From positions 82,736 through 115,000 of the forward strand of contig CALSCP010002371.1 in NCBI GenBank assembly GCA_943704425.1: a DNA stretch of 32,265 bases, written 5' to 3'. A program made the translations under genes and the position numbers. The DNA is from Ministeria vibrans ATCC 50519 (taxonomy: Eukaryota; Protista; Filasterea). This document shows, in pieces, positions 14,434 through 24,965 of this stretch. A model generated the notes under the pieces. It did no database searches. It had not been told where the DNA came from and worked only from the letters and a program-made list of their open reading frames with translations. Every line of letters begins with the position of its first letter. Within the stretch, counting starts at the first letter, position 1.

Positions 14434-17400
14434 TTACAAAAAGGTCAGCAGCTCGGTGCGCTCGTAGGTGTTGGGGCCGTCATCGGGGAGACGGGGATAC
14501 CAGGCGACAAGCGAGTCCTGTGCGCCCATGTACATCGTGTTGTAGACCTTCCAGTAGATGGTGCGCACGCGACGCGCCGGATGGAAGAGGCCCTGCAGCA
14601 GGTAGTAGAGAATGTGGCCGGGCCCCAGGGCAACGCGACAGCCATCAATGGCCTCCATGACGGCATTGATGACGTGTGCACTCGTCTCGAAGATGTTGGG
14701 CCAGACGAGATTTAGAATGTGCGCCAGGGCATCCTCACAGCCAAAGCCGAAAACACCAAGCGCCAAATGCTTGACGGTGGTGCACGCAGTCTGCCGGTGG
14801 ACGGCATCGCGGTCCGTCAGCGCATCCTCGAGCAGCCCCACCACGGCGTAGATGTAGTCCTTGGCCATTTCGCCAATGTATTCAAACATAAACGACATGC
14901 TCTTGAGCACTCCATTCTGCACATTGAGCTCGGGCACGCGGTATTCGTTCATGAGGCCCGGCAGCACCGTAAATGGACTGCACGTCTCGGCCACAATGGC
15001 AATGGCAACCGTTGTGCACACGCGGTTCTGTCGCTCCTGCACCTTGAGGTTGTTAAGCAGCGTCGCGAGCACATCTTGCGGACCAATAGCCTTGGCAATG
15101 TAGCCAAAGGTGTTGACGGCAGCACGACGGATGGCCTTCTTGCGCGCCTTTAGCAACTCAAGCAACTCAAAGCAGATACGCATCCACTCCTTGGAGCTGA
15201 CATACTCAGCTCCGCGGTCGGCAATGCGTCCAATAAGGTCGATGGTCTGCTCCTGGACCTTCTCGTGGCGATTCTTCAGGATGGGTGTGAGGCGCGGCAG
15301 CAGATCCTTGATGGGCGGCGTCATCTTGGACATGCCGACCACATTGACAATGGCCTTGAGTGCCGCGAGAATGCTGCCAAGTACCTCGGGGTACTCCTCG
15401 CCCAGGTACTCGTACAGCACCACCCCAAGATGGTTGAGCAGCTTCTCCTCGCCGCACGTCATCATGACAACCGCAATGCGACTGATGAGATCGGCGGCCT
15501 GCTGGCGCACCGTCGCGCTTTTGTTGTTGAGGCGCCACAGCACACAGCCGCAGATTTGGGGCAGGTAGGGTTTGGAGCGCATGCCGAGCGTGTTCACGAC
15601 GGTGCCAAAGCCATTGAGCATGACATTGTCTTCCATGGTTTGCTCCTGGAAGGCATACAGAATGCCGTCGACAATGCGCTCCTCCAGCTTTGGGTCAATA
15701 TCGGCGGCGCCCAGATTGCCCATGATGCTCTCGATGGTCTCCATGACCATCTTGCGGTAGGGTTCGCTCTCGTCCTTGAGATCCGTCACGACGCGCGTGA
15801 TAATGTCCGAGCTGCCCACCTTGTTTGCCAGCTCGACTGTCGTGTCCACTAACTGCCGATAGTTGCGCTTGTCGAGTGCCATGCGTCGCACCCAAAAGTG
15901 CTTGAAGAAGTCGGGCAAAACCTCGTCACGGATGTACTGTGCCTCGACGCCCTCCGTGCCGCAGCACTGCTTCACCACCTTGAGCACAATCTTCTTCATC
16001 TCCTCGTCGGGCGACTGGAACTCGCGGATGAGGATGATCATCACTTCGCGCGTGTAATAGTTGGCGTACTCGGCGTCCATCAGCGGAATGATGTAGCCAA
16101 TGGCCTTGAGGAAGGCGGCGAGACCCTTGCCACGGTGCAGGCGGATGCCCTTCCACAGGGGCTTGAGCACCGAATCGAACGACTCAATACCGTAGGGAGT
16201 GGATGCCTCGGCAAGCGCGGCCAGGGCCAGTGCCGTGATGGTGCGCACCTTTTGCTGTTCGTCGGCAAGGCCATGTTCGATGATGACAACGAGATTCTTG
16301 AGGTGTGGCAGGACGGCACAACCCATGAGAATGGCAATCTGCTGGACAATTTTGACGCCGGTGTGGCGTGCCTGCCATGACTTCTTGCTGTTGCACACGG
16401 CCTTGAGGAAGGGCAGAAGAGCGGGAATGCCAAGAGCTGAGGCGACCACGGCAAAGGCGCGCGCTGTCGTGTTGCGCACGTACTCGTCCTGATGGTCAAT
16501 ATCGGGGCGCATCGAGCTAATCATGGTCGCCAGGCCCGCCGCCTTGGCCAAGTTGCTAATGATTTCGCGCCCTTCGACGCGCGCATAGTAGTCCTCGTCG
16601 ATGAGCAGCGGCTCAATGACAACAAGGATCTTGTGAGTGTAGGGGCGCACCAGGTCGTCGAGCTTGTACATGATGCGGTCGATGACCTTGACGAGCAGAT
16701 GGCGCTCCTGGTCCTCGAGGTTGGGCGACATGAGCAGCGGTAGAATCTGGTTGAAGAGAGGACCGGCGCCCAGTTCGCGTGCACGGTCCGTCAGCTGGCG
16801 CAGTGCCGACTTGCGCATGGGTGGTGCGCCATTCTTGATCTTGAGCAGCATGCGCATGATTTTGCGCTCCTTGGCCTCCTCGGTCGAGAGAGCGTCGTCG
16901 TCGACGTCGCTCAGCAGCTTGCCAAAGAACTGCTCGTCTTCAGGCTTGATGTAGGGCAGGTCACCGTCCTGGCCGGCCGTGCTGATGCCGTAGTTCTGTT
17001 GTGCGTCCTCCTCCTGCATGAAGAAGCCGCCGTCGCCACCGCCGCTGCCGCCGTGCATGGGTGTGGGAGTGGCCATGAGCTTGCGCGACGGCGTCACCGG
17101 CACATAGTTAGTGGGCTGCTCCACAATGGTGTAGCCTTCGCTGGGGAGGATTGCATTGATCTCGTCGTCCGACATGGGTCGGTTGCGCGCGTCCATTTCG
17201 CGTTCGAGTTTGGCCTGATGAGCCTGCTCGGGTGTCATGGCGGCGGTGGAAGCCATAAAGGCACCCTTGCTTGAGGCAGGTGCCATGAGAATGGGGGTCT
17301 GCATGGACATGGCGGCTGAGCCGACAGGCGTTGCGCCAGCACCACCGTACGCCGGAGCAACCGGCGTCTCGTCCCAGCGCGACCGCTTCTTCGCCGGTGC

Positions 17401-18386
17401 CGACGCACCTGTCGGCGTGGGACCGTCGTCCCAGCGACTGCGACGCGGAGTGGGACCGGCCGTTGCAGATGTGGAGACTGGGGCGGAGTCATCGCCAGCC
17501 TGATCCCAACGGTTGCGGCGCTTGACAGCACCCGACACGGTGGACGAGGTAGCGGCGGAGTCAACAGACGAGACGGACGCCGCCGAGGGCGACGTGCCTC
17601 GTGCCTCGACGCCTTCCTTCTTTTTCTCCTGCGCCTGTTTGTCGCGAATCTTGGCAAGCACGTCGGCCTCCTCGGCGCGCAACTGTTGCTCGAGCATAAC
17701 GTCCTTGTAGGAGCGCGATTCGCCTGTGGTTGAAGTTGCGCTTGATGCGGTGGAAGATGAGGATGGGTGTTGGGGTGTTTGGGCAAAAGGATCGCTTCGT
17801 TCGGGCGAGAGGACGCGCTGGTGTCGGCGAGCGCGGTACTCGTCTTCGCGATCCGAGATCTTCTTGGTGCGATACTCGGCGAAAGGGTCGTCATCGGCAG
17901 CGGCAACGCCAGCGGCAGCGGCAGCCTCTTCGAGGATCTTGGTGGGGGCGGTGATGCCGCGGGGGCGGCGGGCATTCGCCTCCGACAGCACCACCTGCTC
18001 GTCGCCGTCGTCGTCGACGTCCATCGGCGCAATCGACGACACGAAGTCGCTGCCCCCGCGCGTGCTGCCGTACAGGTCCTCGTCGTACCCGACCTTTCCG
18101 ACCAGCGACACCTGCGGCATTGGCGGGTGTGCAGAGCGGAGAGGAGAAAGAGGAAAGAGTGCAAAAAGTGTCAGATTGCTGTTGTCAAGTAAACAGGGAA
18201 GGAGTGAGCGGGGGGTGTTGCAAAGTCAGGTATGGACAGGGAGGTAAAAGAGTGAGTTGATGGTGGGCGACGTGGATCGGAGACGGACCAAACGTCGAAA
18301 CGACTGAAGAAACAGAATTATGGCTTGTTTCTCTTACGACCAAACCGGAAGTTTTACAGAATATGACTCNNNNNNNNNNAAAAAAA

Positions 18387-19794: not shown

Positions 19795-20152
19795 CGAGAG
19801 AACGGACGGGAGTGTGACAGAAGAATGTAATAATAGCAAGTTTATGTTGAACAGGCAACAGACTCGACACACCTCGACACACCCTCGACTCGGATAGATC
19901 ATAAAAATTGACGCAACCTTTGCCACGAGTGAGCCCACGACTGCAACTCACAACATCCATAGGTCATAACCAGCTTGTTGACATAAATAATATTCACAGT
20001 ATTTGATGAAAAGACTTTTTCTCCTAATTATTCAGGAATGAATAATAAAATTAATAATAATAATTATTATTATAATAATAATTAATTTATTTGTTTCTCA
20101 CTTTATAGTTTTTTTATTATTTATTTTCGTACAAGGCTCATCGTATTACACA

Positions 20153-23100
20153 ATGGCGAGCGAACGACCTCGGCGAAAAGTTGTGCGACCCAAAGTAGGA
20201 GAAGAAAGAGAAGCAGTTGTGTCGAGTGCACTGTGCGCCACAGCCCGTCTCCGGCGCACTCCCCTTGCCGCCCACCCGACCCCCGACCTTTTTCTACCAC
20301 CCCTCTGCTCTTCTTTCCTCTTTTTTTTCTGTCTCTCTCTCACACATCAGACAATATGATTGATTGATTTCCTTTTTTTTTTNNNNNNNNNNTTTTTTTT
20401 ATCTATCATCTCTCATTGTCTCATCTGTGGCCCCTCCTCCGTCTCTAGGAGGATACGCTGCTGTCGGTGCTTCCCGAGGAGGAGAAGGCAATCCTGCGAG
20501 CAATGAAGGAGTCGATGGCCACGGCACACTCTGCCGGTGGCGGTCAGAGTGGCGGGACGACCAGTCGCGCCAACGAAGGGCGCGCGACGGGCCGTTACGA
20601 CAACGCCATGATGCAGCAGGCGTTTGCTCTTGAGACGGCGCGCGACGGGGTTGCTGGCGAAGACGACGAGTTTATGGACTATCGTCGTCGCGCAAGGCAG
20701 ACGCACACGGGCGGCAGTCGTCCTGCGACGGCGACGGAAACGGCAGCGCTGTGGGGATCGCCTGTCGCGTCTGTGTCGGCGTCGACGAGAGGCGAGCAGC
20801 AGCAACAGCAGCAACAGCAGCCGCCGCCGCGCCAGGCAAAACTGAGCAGTGGACTTGCGTCGACGCCACACCCGCCGAGACCGTCAGTGCGTGCGTCCAA
20901 GCTGCCGCGGGATGGCGGTCGGTCGTCGACCTTACGTGGTGTCAGCGGTGGTGATCGCATGTTTCCAACTGCACAAGTGCCCGTGTTCTATCCGAGCCGC
21001 GCAGACTTTGCCGATCCAGCCGCGTACATTGCCAAGCTGCAGTCGTATGGCGATCGCTTCGGCATGGTCAAGATTGTCCCGCCGCTCGAGTTTCGACCGC
21101 CCTTTGCCGTGCTTCAGCAGGTCGCCAAGGTCGCGTCGGTGACGCAACCGGTGCACCAGCTCATGTGTCGCACCGGTGCCAACGTGGACTACCTCGACTG
21201 CCTGCGCTTCTTTTTGAGCGAGCGCAACATTCAACTGCGCACCCCGCACATTCAGAAGCGACCCATCGACCTGCCGCTACTGGCGCGTCTTGTGAGTAAC
21301 GCTGGAGGGATGAGTGCCGTCTCGGACCAAGGCAAGTGGGGTGAAATTGCCGATTTGATGCATTTGCCGCATGCATCGAAGCGCGACGAGAAACTCTGTG
21401 AGATCTACGTGGATCATCTGCTTCAGTTTGACCACCTGTCGACAGCGGAGCATATGCGGCTGCGACAGCGCGTGCGCGACATTGATCCGGCCGACTCTAC
21501 ACGGCTAGGCATGAGCCGTCATCTGGGCTCCTTTGCATTCACGCCGCGCTCGTCGTCGACCATGAAGGCGTTCCAGTCGGACGCCGAGAGCTTGCAGGCG
21601 GCTTGGATTGCCGATCGAACCATGACGGACGCGGCGTACGAGCAGGAGTTTTGGCGTCTGGTCGAGGAGCGCGAAGAGGCGTTTTACGCGCCGGTCGCCA
21701 GCAACATTGACACGCTGCAGGTGGGCAGTGGCTTTAGTCGGCGTGCGCTGCCGATGTCGGAACGCGAAACGGTGGCGGCCTCGTCGCTTGACGGCATCTC
21801 ACGCGCTATCAATCCGCAGCGCGTGGCCGAAGCGCGACGCGCGCTCGAGGACGATGCGGCTGCGTATGCCGATAGTCCTTGGAATTTGAATGTGCTACCA
21901 CGCCTGCCGTCGGGACTTCTTGCCTACCTACCCGAGAAGCTGTTGCCCGTCGTGACGGCGCCCTGGCTGGACTGCGGCGCGCTCTTTGGCGCGACACCCT
22001 GGCAGGTGGAAGATCAGGGTCTGTACACGGTACACTATATGCACTACGGCAGCAATCAGCGCTGGTACTCGGTGCCCTGTTCGCAGGCAGACGCTTTTGA
22101 GGAGGCTATGCGCGAGATTGTGCCTGAACTCTTTGATGCAATGCCCGACCTGTTACAGCGTCGCCTCACCATGGTGTCGCCGGGTCTGCTGCAGCGTCAT
22201 GGCGTGCCCGTGTACACGACGGTGCAGACAGCTGGTGAGTACATTGTGACGTTTCCGCGCGTATACCGTGCCGGCTTCTCCCAAGGACCCAACTGCATCG
22301 AAACGAGCGTGTTTGCGCCTGCCGAATGGATTCCGCATGGCATCAACAGCATGTACCTCAACTGCGAGCACACGCTGCGCAATGCCTTTAGCGTGCAAGA
22401 GCTTGTGACACGCGCCGCTCGCGAGTGTACCGACCCACACACGTGTCGCATTCTGCGCGACGCCATGGACGAGCTTATTGAAGAGGAGGATGCAATGCGC
22501 GCGCGTGCTGGCCAACTTCAGATTCTCAAGTTTTTTTCCATCAACAACAGCGACAAAAAACAACGCCCGCCACAGATTGTGACCAACGACGTGTCGTCCG
22601 ACTCGGACGGCAACACCTCAGACACGCCGGATGCCTCGCTGCCCGTAGCGTCAGGAGCGGCATCGCGTGGGGGCGAGCCATCGTCTCAGGAGGCCGACGG
22701 TAGCAGTGTGACCCAACGCAATCGACTCCGTGGTGCGCTGCGAACGCGACACATGACGAGACGGTCTGCGTCGCGTACCGGCTCGCTTGTGACGAGCAGT
22801 GCGGTTGCATGTTGCGTCTGCAAGAGCCTTGGCTACTGGTCGTTTGTCGTGTGTAGTTGTACGCCGACGCGTGCCACATGCATTATGCACTCTTTTGACA
22901 ATTGTGAGTGCGCAGCCGAGCAGAAGACGCTCTGGTACCGCTATCTTGTGGACGATCTGCAGACGTTGCGCAATCGCGTTGGCGCGTTGGCAGAGGAAGA
23001 GCCTGTGAGGACGCCCGAGGTGGTGAAGAAGGCCGACGAGGGAGCAAAGGAGACCGAGGAGAACGGGAATGACACGGAGAAGAAGGAGGAGGAAGGTGCG

Positions 23101-24965
23101 ACACCAATGGAGACGGATGAAGGGGTGAAAAAGGAGGGTGATACAGCAGTGAGTGATGATGTGAAGGGAAAGGGACCCAAGAAGTCGGCACCTTCAGTCG
23201 GAGCAGCAGCTGCATCAGCAGCTGCAGCATCATCGGTACCCACTACAGCAGCATCAGCAGCTGCAGCATCATCGGTATCCACTACGATGGTGAATCACAA
23301 TGGCGTAGAGCCATTGCTTGCACCGCGTGAGTCACCATTGGTGCGCCCTGTTGCACTGGGCGATGCCAAGGTGGACTCCTTTACTAGCAATGGTCAAGCT
23401 GTTGTCGTCAAGAGCTTTTCTGCATCGACTCCAGTCACGTAAATATAATAATAATAATAGTTATAATATTATAGTATTAATTTATTCCATCTTACACCTG
23501 TAGAGTTCAAGATGAAGGGACTGGCCGATTGCGAGTGTTTGATGTGGTTGGGACGAAGGAGATGACGCCGGTGTTTAATGCGAATGACGTGGACCACTGC
23601 TATGCGGTGACGCTGGAAACCGCACCGACGAGTGTACAGCTGCTTGTCAAGGCCATGTCGGGTGAGGATGAGATTCTCGTGTACGACTCGACGGTGGGTG
23701 CGATGCGCCCGCTCAAGGAGTTTGACACCGTCTCGTGCAATGCGGTGGGCGTGTACGAGATTACCCTTCCGCTCATGCCCATTCCCGATTGGATTTCCGC
23801 TCATCGTTTGGTTGTCACCAGTCGCCTGAGAACCAAAATGGTACTGCTTTTTGTTTTTTTTTTTGTTTCTTTTTTGTTGTGAATACTATAATATTATTAT
23901 AATTATTATATTATTATATATTGTTGTTGTTGTTGTTTTTATTATGATTAATTATGATTAATATTGTTGTTGTTGTTGTTTTTATTGTTGTTGTTGTGTA
24001 ATAGTCCGAGTACTCGGTGATGATTCGAACGGCGCCCTCTGACGGACCGTCGTCGGCGTCGAAGAAACGGAAGATTGCGCGCTTGCCACGTTCCAAGAAG
24101 ACGCGACGAGTGAACAAGGATCAAAAGCAGGCGGTTGAGAAGGGGGAGACGGAAGAGGGAAATGAGGAAGAGGAGGGGGAAGAAGAAGAAGAAGACGAAG
24201 AAGAAGACGAAGAAGAAGAAGAAGAAGAAGAGAACGCAGCAATGGACACGAGCGAAGGTGAGCCGTCGGAGAAGATGAAGCACCGATCGTTGACAAAAAA
24301 GGGGGATATGGTGGAGGACGAGCTGAGTGCGGACGGGGACACAGCAATGTCAGTGGTTGACGTGAGCGATGAGAACGACGAGGACGAGGACGATAAGGAT
24401 GGCGCAGTGAAACCGACGAAGAAGGTGAACTGGGTGGCGTATGGTGGGCCTGTTCGCTTGGAAGAGGATAGCGACGATGGCAACGACGCCAACGAGAGCG
24501 AAGAGAAGGAGGGAAAAAACGTAAAGAAAGCGGGGGCCGAGGGGACGGAGGAACAAGGGCACGATGGTGGCGAAGAGGAGGAGGAATGCAAGGCTCGACT
24601 TGTGGACGAGAACGAGCGAGTGTACCAGCCTGCCATTGCAGTGGTGCGCAACATGGCCAAGGTGCAGCGCGCAACACGTTCCGTTGAGGTTGCTGGCACG
24701 GGATTTCGACGTGCCACGCACGGGTTTAACCTGAGGTAAAGAATAGAAATTGAAGGAAAGAACATAACAATGATGATGATGATGATGTAGGGACTCGACG
24801 GGTGTGATTTTGCCCTGCAATGTGGTACACGTGAGCGACACGTCGTTGGTGATTGAGCTGGAAGAGGGAACGTTGAGTGGGGCAGCAGTGGGTGCGTTGC
24901 AGTTTACGGTGAAGCTGGACGCGACGCGTGAAACGCAACCAGTCGATGTGGGACTTCTTGATTAG
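20153..24965 (+). CDS. JARID2: JARID2-like / KDM5-related JmjN-ARID-JmjC-C5HC2 protein, catalytically inactive, ~1424 aa
   Basis: Exons 20153-20194, 20449-23438, 23504-23840, 24005-24735, 24791-24965 (4275 nt, phases consistent). JmjN VPVFYPSRADFADPAAYI...FGMVKIVPP; ARID; JmjC; C5HC2 finger; no PHD seen. The symbol is the best match by recalled motifs. Confidence 0.8.
23211..23285 (+). repeat. In-frame tandem duplication (~39-nt period) encoding ASAAAASSV(P/S)TT twice
   Basis: gcatcagcagctgcagcatcatcggta(c/t)ccactac occurs twice in tandem. Confidence 0.85.

Follow-up and report, generated by a model that had tools for sequence, protein, structure and literature searches.

The window analysed here, a stretch of 32,265 nucleotides from contig CALSCP010002371.1, harbors on its forward strand a gene which extends from position 20153 to about 24965 and whose product is best read as a member of the JARID2 lineage. 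JARID2 is treated as an animal link between H2A ubiquitylation by Polycomb repressive complex 1 (PRC1) and Polycomb repressive complex 2 (PRC2); the organism carrying the window, here called the host, is not an animal. The explanation that best joins all results, to which we assign a probability of about 0.7, is that a non-animal marine protist has a nuclear JARID2-lineage pseudo-enzyme which acts as reader and scaffold, most likely without PRC2. The data described below directly support the 5' gene model, the expression of the gene, its domains and its dead cofactor site, as well as the closest relatives of its product and the motifs shared with JARID2.

The gene is real, spliced and expressed, with two introns documented by RNA contigs and two more predicted. 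An open reading frame (ORF) of 991 aa located at 20467-23442 is preceded by a short exon, and junctions were checked with contigs of four public runs aligned on 19900-23600. Exon 1 (20153-20194) comprises an ATG and 13 codons including a basic ERPRR motif. Its ATG is the first one after an in-frame TAG at 20105, so that a start further upstream is ruled out. Exon 1 ends in phase 0, intron 1 (20195-20448) has its GT at 20195 and its AG at 20447-20448, and exon 2 is read in the frame of the ORF. An RNA-type contig of run X6 (2864 nt) aligns with 20124-20194 and then directly with 20449-23241, skipping 254 nt with GT..AG ends; therefore, the junction of 20194 with 20449, and with it the spliced N-terminus put forward in the original prediction, is real. 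The assembly has a gap at 20383-20392, within a poly-T run of intron 1, and the 254 nt are thus the length of this intron in the assembly. A DNA contig of run X1 stops at 20393 with a loose T15 (fifteen unaligned T's); hence, the gap is a homopolymer that broke the assembly, and the reading frame is unaffected. The T homopolymer causing this break covers 20373-20402.

Exon 2 (20449-23438; 996 codons and 2 bases) encodes the main body of the protein and is covered by the X6 contig over 20449-23241 and by the joints at both of its ends. Intron 2 (23439-23503; 65 nt, GT..AG) is demonstrated by the joint of 23438 with 23504 in contigs of runs X6 and X17. Its splicing takes out the apparent stop at 23440-23442 and coding continues in exon 3, so that the gene extends beyond both position 23000 and the stop at 23442. 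Exon 3 (23504-23840; about 112 codons) has its start given by reads and its end predicted from a GT donor. Exon 4 (24005-24735), with a basic stretch and a long acidic tract, and exon 5 (24791-24965), which lies behind a 55-nt GT..AG intron, keeps the reading frame and carries the stop at 24963-24965, are predicted from the reading frame and the AG/GT sites. No Pfam, protein-atlas or homologue match was obtained for exon 3 among the collected relatives, exon 4 yielded no Pfam family and no atlas or local homologue, and exons 3-5 together (region 23439-24965) have no homologue among the collected relatives. Pieces of the gene were also found in the polyA marine metatranscriptome X18. The intergenic and intron DNA around the exons (20020-20130, 23440-23500, 23850-24000) is very AT-rich with runs of the (AAT)n and (TTG)n type; the coding DNA has about 60% GC.

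Pfam domains of the window protein are, all on the plus strand, JmjN (PF02375, 20980-21081, E = 1.2e-12), ARID (PF01388, 21187-21474, E = 2.6e-14), JmjC (PF02373, 21964-22314, E = 4.9e-25, 88.6 bits) and the zinc finger zf-C5HC2 (PF02928, 22810-22968, E = 1.9e-11). The ARID region includes the C-terminal helix motif LLQFDHLSTAEH and has JARID2 as its best match in the Protein Data Bank (PDB). The Pfam scan revealed neither a PHD nor a PLU-1 domain, in agreement with the original prediction, which had noted the lack of PHD fingers. A succession of JmjN, ARID, JmjC and C5HC2 without PHD fingers is the architecture of JARID2 (PMC3034028). All peptides quoted in the original prediction are present in the sequence at their positions, and the human JARID2 strings it had given were recovered as well: the PDB chain 7kso_F aligns over the ARID domain and EQEYWRLVEE, and the vertebrate-type protein P0057 starts with the N-terminus given there.

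The cofactor site of the JmjC domain was read at the five positions corresponding to H483, E485, N493, K501 and H571 of KDM5A across all collected relatives. The window protein has Q513 (22003-22005), E515, H523, Q531 and R601 (22267-22269), thus QEHQR, as compared to HENKH in every KDM5 examined including that of the host. Choanoflagellate relatives also have HENKH (one has HESKH), and animal JARID2 proteins show various other replacements. In the alignment, the iron-ligand segments read WQVED and VYRAGF in the window protein versus WHIED and AYHSGF in KDM5A. Since four of the five residues binding Fe(II) and 2-oxoglutarate are replaced, namely both iron histidines, the 2-oxoglutarate lysine and the asparagine, with only E515 kept, the JmjC domain should be catalytically dead and demethylation is not expected.

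The N-terminus also links the protein to JARID2. An acidic run followed by ILRAMKESM (20476-20517, plus strand) would form a helix resembling a ubiquitin-interacting motif (UIM), and in alignments it coincides with the UIM region of JARID2 proteins from choanoflagellates and animals. The UIM helix of the human protein (aa 24-41) recognizes the ubiquitin of H2AK119ub nucleosomes (bioRxiv 10.1101/2020.04.20.049213). The spacing between the basic RPxR motif and this helix is that of JARID2: the RP of ERPRR occupies residues 5-6 of the window protein and ILRAMKESM, its UIM core, begins at residue 29; the respective positions are 5-6 and 29 in a vertebrate-like relative, 6-7 (within RPKR) and 30 in Nematostella, 7-8 and 29 in Didymoeca costata, and 7-8 and 26 in Salpingoeca kvevrii. 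The same type of N-terminal start was found in a marine metatranscriptome contig (L043). Against a profile built from the N-terminal modules of 28 relatives, window protein excluded, the spliced protein scored 16.6 bits and the best of 3000 shuffles 9.3 bits. Exon 2 alone reached 7.3 bits; therefore, exon 1 does hold part of the N-terminal signal, in line with the original prediction. From its sequence, an N-terminal ubiquitin-interaction motif of the JARID2 type is present, and binding of ubiquitin would follow from this likeness.

Like the N-terminal module, two further characters are independent of the tree. The motif LLxYDxLSxxE in the helix following the ARID domain occurs in the window protein, in 4/8 choanoflagellate-type proteins and in 54/76 animal JARID2 proteins, but in none of 49 KDM5 proteins. 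Between JmjN and JmjC, 47 of the 49 KDM5 proteins have cysteines arranged as in a PHD finger; no such pattern exists in the window protein or the rest of the JARID2 clade. Taken at the sequence level, the N-terminal module, the ARID-extension motif and the absence of PHD1 thus favour JARID2.

The motifs connecting animal JARID2 with PRC2 are largely missing. Trimethylated K116 of human JARID2 activates PRC2 via EED (bioRxiv 10.1101/2020.04.20.049213); a QRKF motif of this K116 type exists in 53/73 animal relatives, whereas a regular-expression scan found none upstream of JmjN in the window protein. A SUZ12-binding motif of the EDFLTFLCLRG type is present in 52/73 animal relatives. In the window, the same kind of scan detected EDDEFMDYRRR (20659-20691, plus strand), which has an EF-x-DY core in common with TEEFVDYLCLRK of the marine protein P0138 and a counterpart, TEDFLTFLCLRG, in Nematostella. 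This is a resemblance only, and EDDEFMDYRRR may at best be a degenerate remnant of the SUZ12-binding motif. The acanthoecid choanoflagellate Helgoeca nana and the related protein P0033 contain ATDFVSF / AKDFVTY stretches, which are possibly the same SUZ12-type motif.

Database searches were carried out with the exons separately, and the joined spliced protein was used for motif alignment and profile scoring. Against PDB sequences, the JmjN-ARID half scored 118.8 bits with JARID2 and 79.6 bits with KDM5A; against profiles, the values were 156.7 bits for JARID2 and 128.8 bits for KDM5. When 1.84 billion representative proteins were searched exhaustively with HMMER, the JmjN-ARID part retrieved S. 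kvevrii, D. costata and H. nana as best foreign matches, later Microstomoeca roanoka and Choanoeca flexa, and next after these choanoflagellates the animal "protein Jumonji" of molluscs, Nematostella, Trichoplax and others. In a protein-language-model atlas, six "Protein Jumonji" clusters ranked top (0.91) and clusters of JHD2/KDM5 reached at most 0.87. A word-index search with the whole ORF gave KDM5-type matches only because too few 5-mers are common to the window protein and JARID2.

The choanoflagellate JARID2-like proteins, which are EukProt transcripts (P0027, P0029, P0034, P0126 and P0048), are the best matches of the window protein; they have the same architecture without PHD1, and several have the RPxR-UIM N-terminus. 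Their JmjN-to-JmjC distance equals that of JARID2 and of the window protein, about 255-300 residues versus 340-530 in KDM5. They differ from the window protein by their HENKH site, and identity to it amounts to 24-28%. According to their sequences, they may be active demethylases equipped with a ubiquitin reader. Choanoflagellates have PRC2 and H3K27me3 (PMC12572184). A metagenome scan for closer relatives which could split the long branch of the window protein found none nearer than about 30-42% identity; it added one choanoflagellate-type orthologue with the same N-terminus (L043, 1273-2739). P0138 is an intronless ORF of 960 codons (2.9 kb) on contigs from Tara Oceans and other marine metagenomes (L041:1045-3927, L042:511-3393). 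It has a UIM at the very N-terminus, the QRKF-type motif LQRKFPS, TEEFVDYLCLRK and a half-dead triad HEI, and it branches beside animal JARID2.

Compared with animal JARID2, the window protein thus has the same domain order, the same loss of PHD fingers and of cofactor residues, the same N-terminal spacing and the LLxYDxLSxxE motif, and it falls in a joint clade. It differs in a much shorter N-terminal region (JmjN near residue 190 as compared to residue 550 and beyond), in the lack of QRKF, in different substitutions in the dead site of a JmjC scaffold that is still KDM5-like, in a C-terminal extension without homologues, and in a host without detected PRC2. With the H3K4me3 demethylases of the KDM5/JARID1 family (Lid, RBR-2, Jhd2) it shares common ancestry and the domain core. 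Unlike the window protein, these have PHD1 between ARID and JmjC, PLU-1 and C-terminal PHD fingers (PF00628 and PF08429 in the matches), an intact HENKH site and JmjN at the very N-terminus, and they have no UIM module.

A maximum-likelihood (ML) tree of the JmjN, ARID and JmjC regions (63 rows, 397 columns, LG+C20+F+G4) united the window protein, P0138, eight choanoflagellate-type proteins and animal JARID2 in one clade, with 93 in the ultrafast bootstrap (UFBoot) and 98 in the Shimodaira-Hasegawa-like approximate likelihood ratio test (SH-aLRT). The KDM5 of the host was sister to animal KDM5 (99/97) with the fungi outside. In a tree of the N-terminal half, the window protein branched as the sister of a group formed by the JARID2 proteins of choanoflagellates and animals (82-84% SH-aLRT). 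The tree placement, the scores of the JmjN-ARID half, the three shared derived characters and the atlas matches are the reasons why we regard the window protein, with fairly good confidence, as an orthologue from the JARID2 lineage rather than as a KDM5.

The host was characterized from its own genes. SF3B1 is encoded in the window at 14434-18120 on the minus strand by a single uninterrupted ORF of 1228 codons (3.7 kb). Its identity is 72.0-72.5% to animals and 70.9-71.6% to chytrid and Basidiobolus SF3B1; animals compared with each other show 79-89%, and animals compared with fungi 72-74%. As the identity between host and animals is about that between animals and fungi, the host is as distant from animals as fungi are. 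These sequences support a host outside the animals, in keeping with the apparently unicellular genome of the original prediction, and the position of its KDM5 beside animal KDM5 with fungi outside points to Holozoa. The host is thus a non-animal marine protist and probably a holozoan; metagenomes of seawater, algal and marine origin contain its DNA, and one metagenome contig encodes the identical protein. The SF3B1 gene is intron-rich in animals and choanoflagellates; the uninterrupted ORF fits the intron-poor state of the host genes examined in the assembly (29.7 Mb, 2860 contigs). That the host is itself a choanoflagellate was considered and set aside, given the intron-poor genes, the missing PRC2 and the N-half tree, in which the window protein stands outside choanoflagellates and animals. 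The host KDM5 gene (contig C245 of assembly G000, locus L015:3256-7266, minus strand) encodes JmjN, ARID, JmjC, KDM5_C-hel and C5HC2, and its catalytic residues are all intact. Pfam detected no PHD in the two ORF pieces that separate its ARID from its JmjC; PHD1 may therefore be lacking or have diverged in this gene.

Six-frame domain searches of the whole assembly revealed no candidate for VEFS-Box (SUZ12), preSET_CXC, PRC2_HTH_1 or Ezh2_MCSS (EZH); EED, which has no specific model, was not searched. JmjC, ARID, SET and ubiquitin-like domains were readily found by the same method. All 17 loci holding the 19 SET matches were read by their motifs and post-SET cysteines; none is EZH-like, and they look like SET1/MLL, SET2/NSD, SUV420, SET8, SUV39-like, SMYD or SETD3/6. 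Judged by these searches, PRC2 is probably absent from the host genome. The original prediction had named the lack of PRC2 core genes as grounds for giving it up, and had expected coupling of PRC1 to PRC2; with no EZH or SUZ12 signatures, no QRKF and a SUZ12 motif that is degenerate at best, this coupling finds no support in the host. Loss of the machinery for H3K27 methylation is reported for the unicellular holozoans Capsaspora and Creolimax (PMC12572184). One hint of a PRC1-type ligase is a RAWUL-like fragment (C202:173-325), which resembles a PCGF/RING1-type C-terminus truncated where the contig begins and scores 32.3 bits versus a cut-off of 33.5 bits. Another RAWUL match (C1887:4889-5080) was rejected as PRC1; it belongs to a WD40 protein of the WDR48 type with a C-terminal ubiquitin-like fold. 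A ubiquitin-family search (E ≤ 1e-15) returned a ubiquitin-like N-terminal fusion (C2215:6831-7040), a NEDD8-like gene (C1345:118565-118747) and a ubiquitin-like domain inside an ORF of 1649 codons (C986:41283-41495); a canonical ubiquitin gene was not recovered in one piece by this search.

Several results weigh against the assignment to JARID2. With the JmjC-zinc-finger half, KDM5A is the best match among PDB sequences (201 bits versus 80 bits for JARID2), and KDM5 also scores above JARID2 with profiles of the JmjC half; the scores are thus a mosaic, JARID2-like in the N-terminal half and still KDM5-like in the C-terminal half as far as sequence profiles tell. When the window protein was constrained to the whole KDM5 clade, the loss was 12.6 lnL (log-likelihood) units, and the approximately unbiased (AU) test did not reject this position (p = 0.108). 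A JmjC-only tree placed it with animal JARID2 at weak support (80% SH-aLRT) and choanoflagellates elsewhere, a grouping that could be an attraction between degenerate domains. Upon removal of animal JARID2 and P0138, the window protein fell at the base of the ingroup without a resolved position. A long branch of 1.8 changes per site leads to it, and the tree alone is therefore good but not decisive. The Pfam UIM model, applied at E up to 10, did not match the window protein; it does not match true JARID2 either. On these grounds one may suppose a lineage-specific, fast-evolving KDM5 offshoot which lost PHD1 and the catalytic residues on its own, so that its likeness to JARID2 would reflect convergence and long-branch attraction. 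We consider this unlikely. Placing the window protein next to the host KDM5 costs 49.8 lnL units (AU p = 0.00017), so that the test rejects a recent duplication of that gene as the origin of the window gene; furthermore, the protein stays outside the KDM5 clade, with 85-87% SH-aLRT, whether the full or the N-half tree is taken. Convergence would need to account for an RPxR-UIM module of identical spacing, for an ARID-extension motif that no KDM5 has, and for a JmjN-ARID half that scores higher with JARID2. The claim of a true JARID2 stands as regards the clade (93/98), the N-half scores and the shared characters, but falls short of excluding KDM5 by the AU test.

The probable lack of PRC2, too, has its limits: it is read from a fragmented assembly, the searches had no eukaryotic positive control for the families concerned, and the RAWUL fragment, as the trace of PRC1, stays below threshold. 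The protein could then be a working accessory subunit of the PRC2.2 type, with a host PRC2 that is divergent or unassembled and H2A ubiquitylation coupled to H3K27 methylation as in animals. The conserved RPxR-UIM module and the likeness of EDDEFMDY to the SUZ12-binding motif of P0138 and animals are consistent with such a role, but zero candidates for four EZH- and SUZ12-specific families, the likeness of all 17 SET loci to other types and the missing QRKF-type lysine make it improbable. Even less credible is demethylation of histones by the protein through an unusual metal site. The JmjC scaffold is well preserved, as its scores with Pfam JmjC and KDM5A indicate, and E515 is retained; nevertheless, neither of the two iron histidines (now Q513 and R601) is left, the lysine and the asparagine are substituted as well (by Q531 and H523, respectively), and to our knowledge no JmjC enzyme functions with such a set of cofactor residues.

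Based on the assignment to the JARID2 lineage, the following mode of action is proposed. The KDM5-type JmjN-ARID-JmjC-C5HC2 core would be kept as a scaffold and not as an enzyme. Nucleosomal ubiquitin would be bound by the RPRR motif and the UIM helix, the most plausible target being H2A that a PRC1-type RING1/PCGF ligase has ubiquitylated, and the ARID domain would bind DNA. Partners may be carried by the dead JmjC/zinc-finger core together with the lineage-specific C-terminal extension. Since neither EZH nor SUZ12 was found in the genome and the EED-activating QRKF lysine is missing, the protein most likely acts without PRC2 in its host. Ubiquitin binding, independence of PRC2 and the order of the evolutionary events described below are what we infer from these sequences.

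By sequence comparison, the JARID2 family is older than animals, as the original prediction had supposed; the five choanoflagellate orthologues are firmer evidence for this than the window gene. JARID2 would have arisen from a KDM5-like gene before animals. Catalytic death looks independent in the window lineage and in animals because the substitutions differ between the window protein and animal JARID2. The occurrence of a UIM, QRKF and a SUZ12-type motif together in P0138 suggests that the full PRC2.2 interface may predate animals. These points can be joined in a tentative scenario, which we rate at slightly less than an even chance: JARID2 would have begun in unicellular holozoans as an active KDM5 paralogue with an RPxR-UIM module, choanoflagellates would keep the active form, animals and the window lineage would have inactivated it independently, the full PRC2.2 interface may have existed before animals, and the JARID2 of the window would have outlived the loss of PRC2.

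Among the papers searched, no report of JARID2 outside animals was found, which is not proof that none exists. The choanoflagellate orthologues, together with a deeper protist that probably lacks PRC2, would move the origin of the reader module before animals, and the HENKH site of the choanoflagellate proteins suggests that the ancestral form of JARID2 was an active demethylase. In Salpingoeca rosetta, a 2025 study left the mode of PRC2 recruitment undetermined and found variant PRC1 to be present (PMC12572184); the choanoflagellate JARID2-like genes are candidates for the missing PRC2 recruiter in this species. The window gene, in turn, would be a natural experiment on the function of JARID2 without PRC2. 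If true, the survival of JARID2 after the loss of PRC2 implies a PRC2-independent job for the module reading ubiquitylated H2A.

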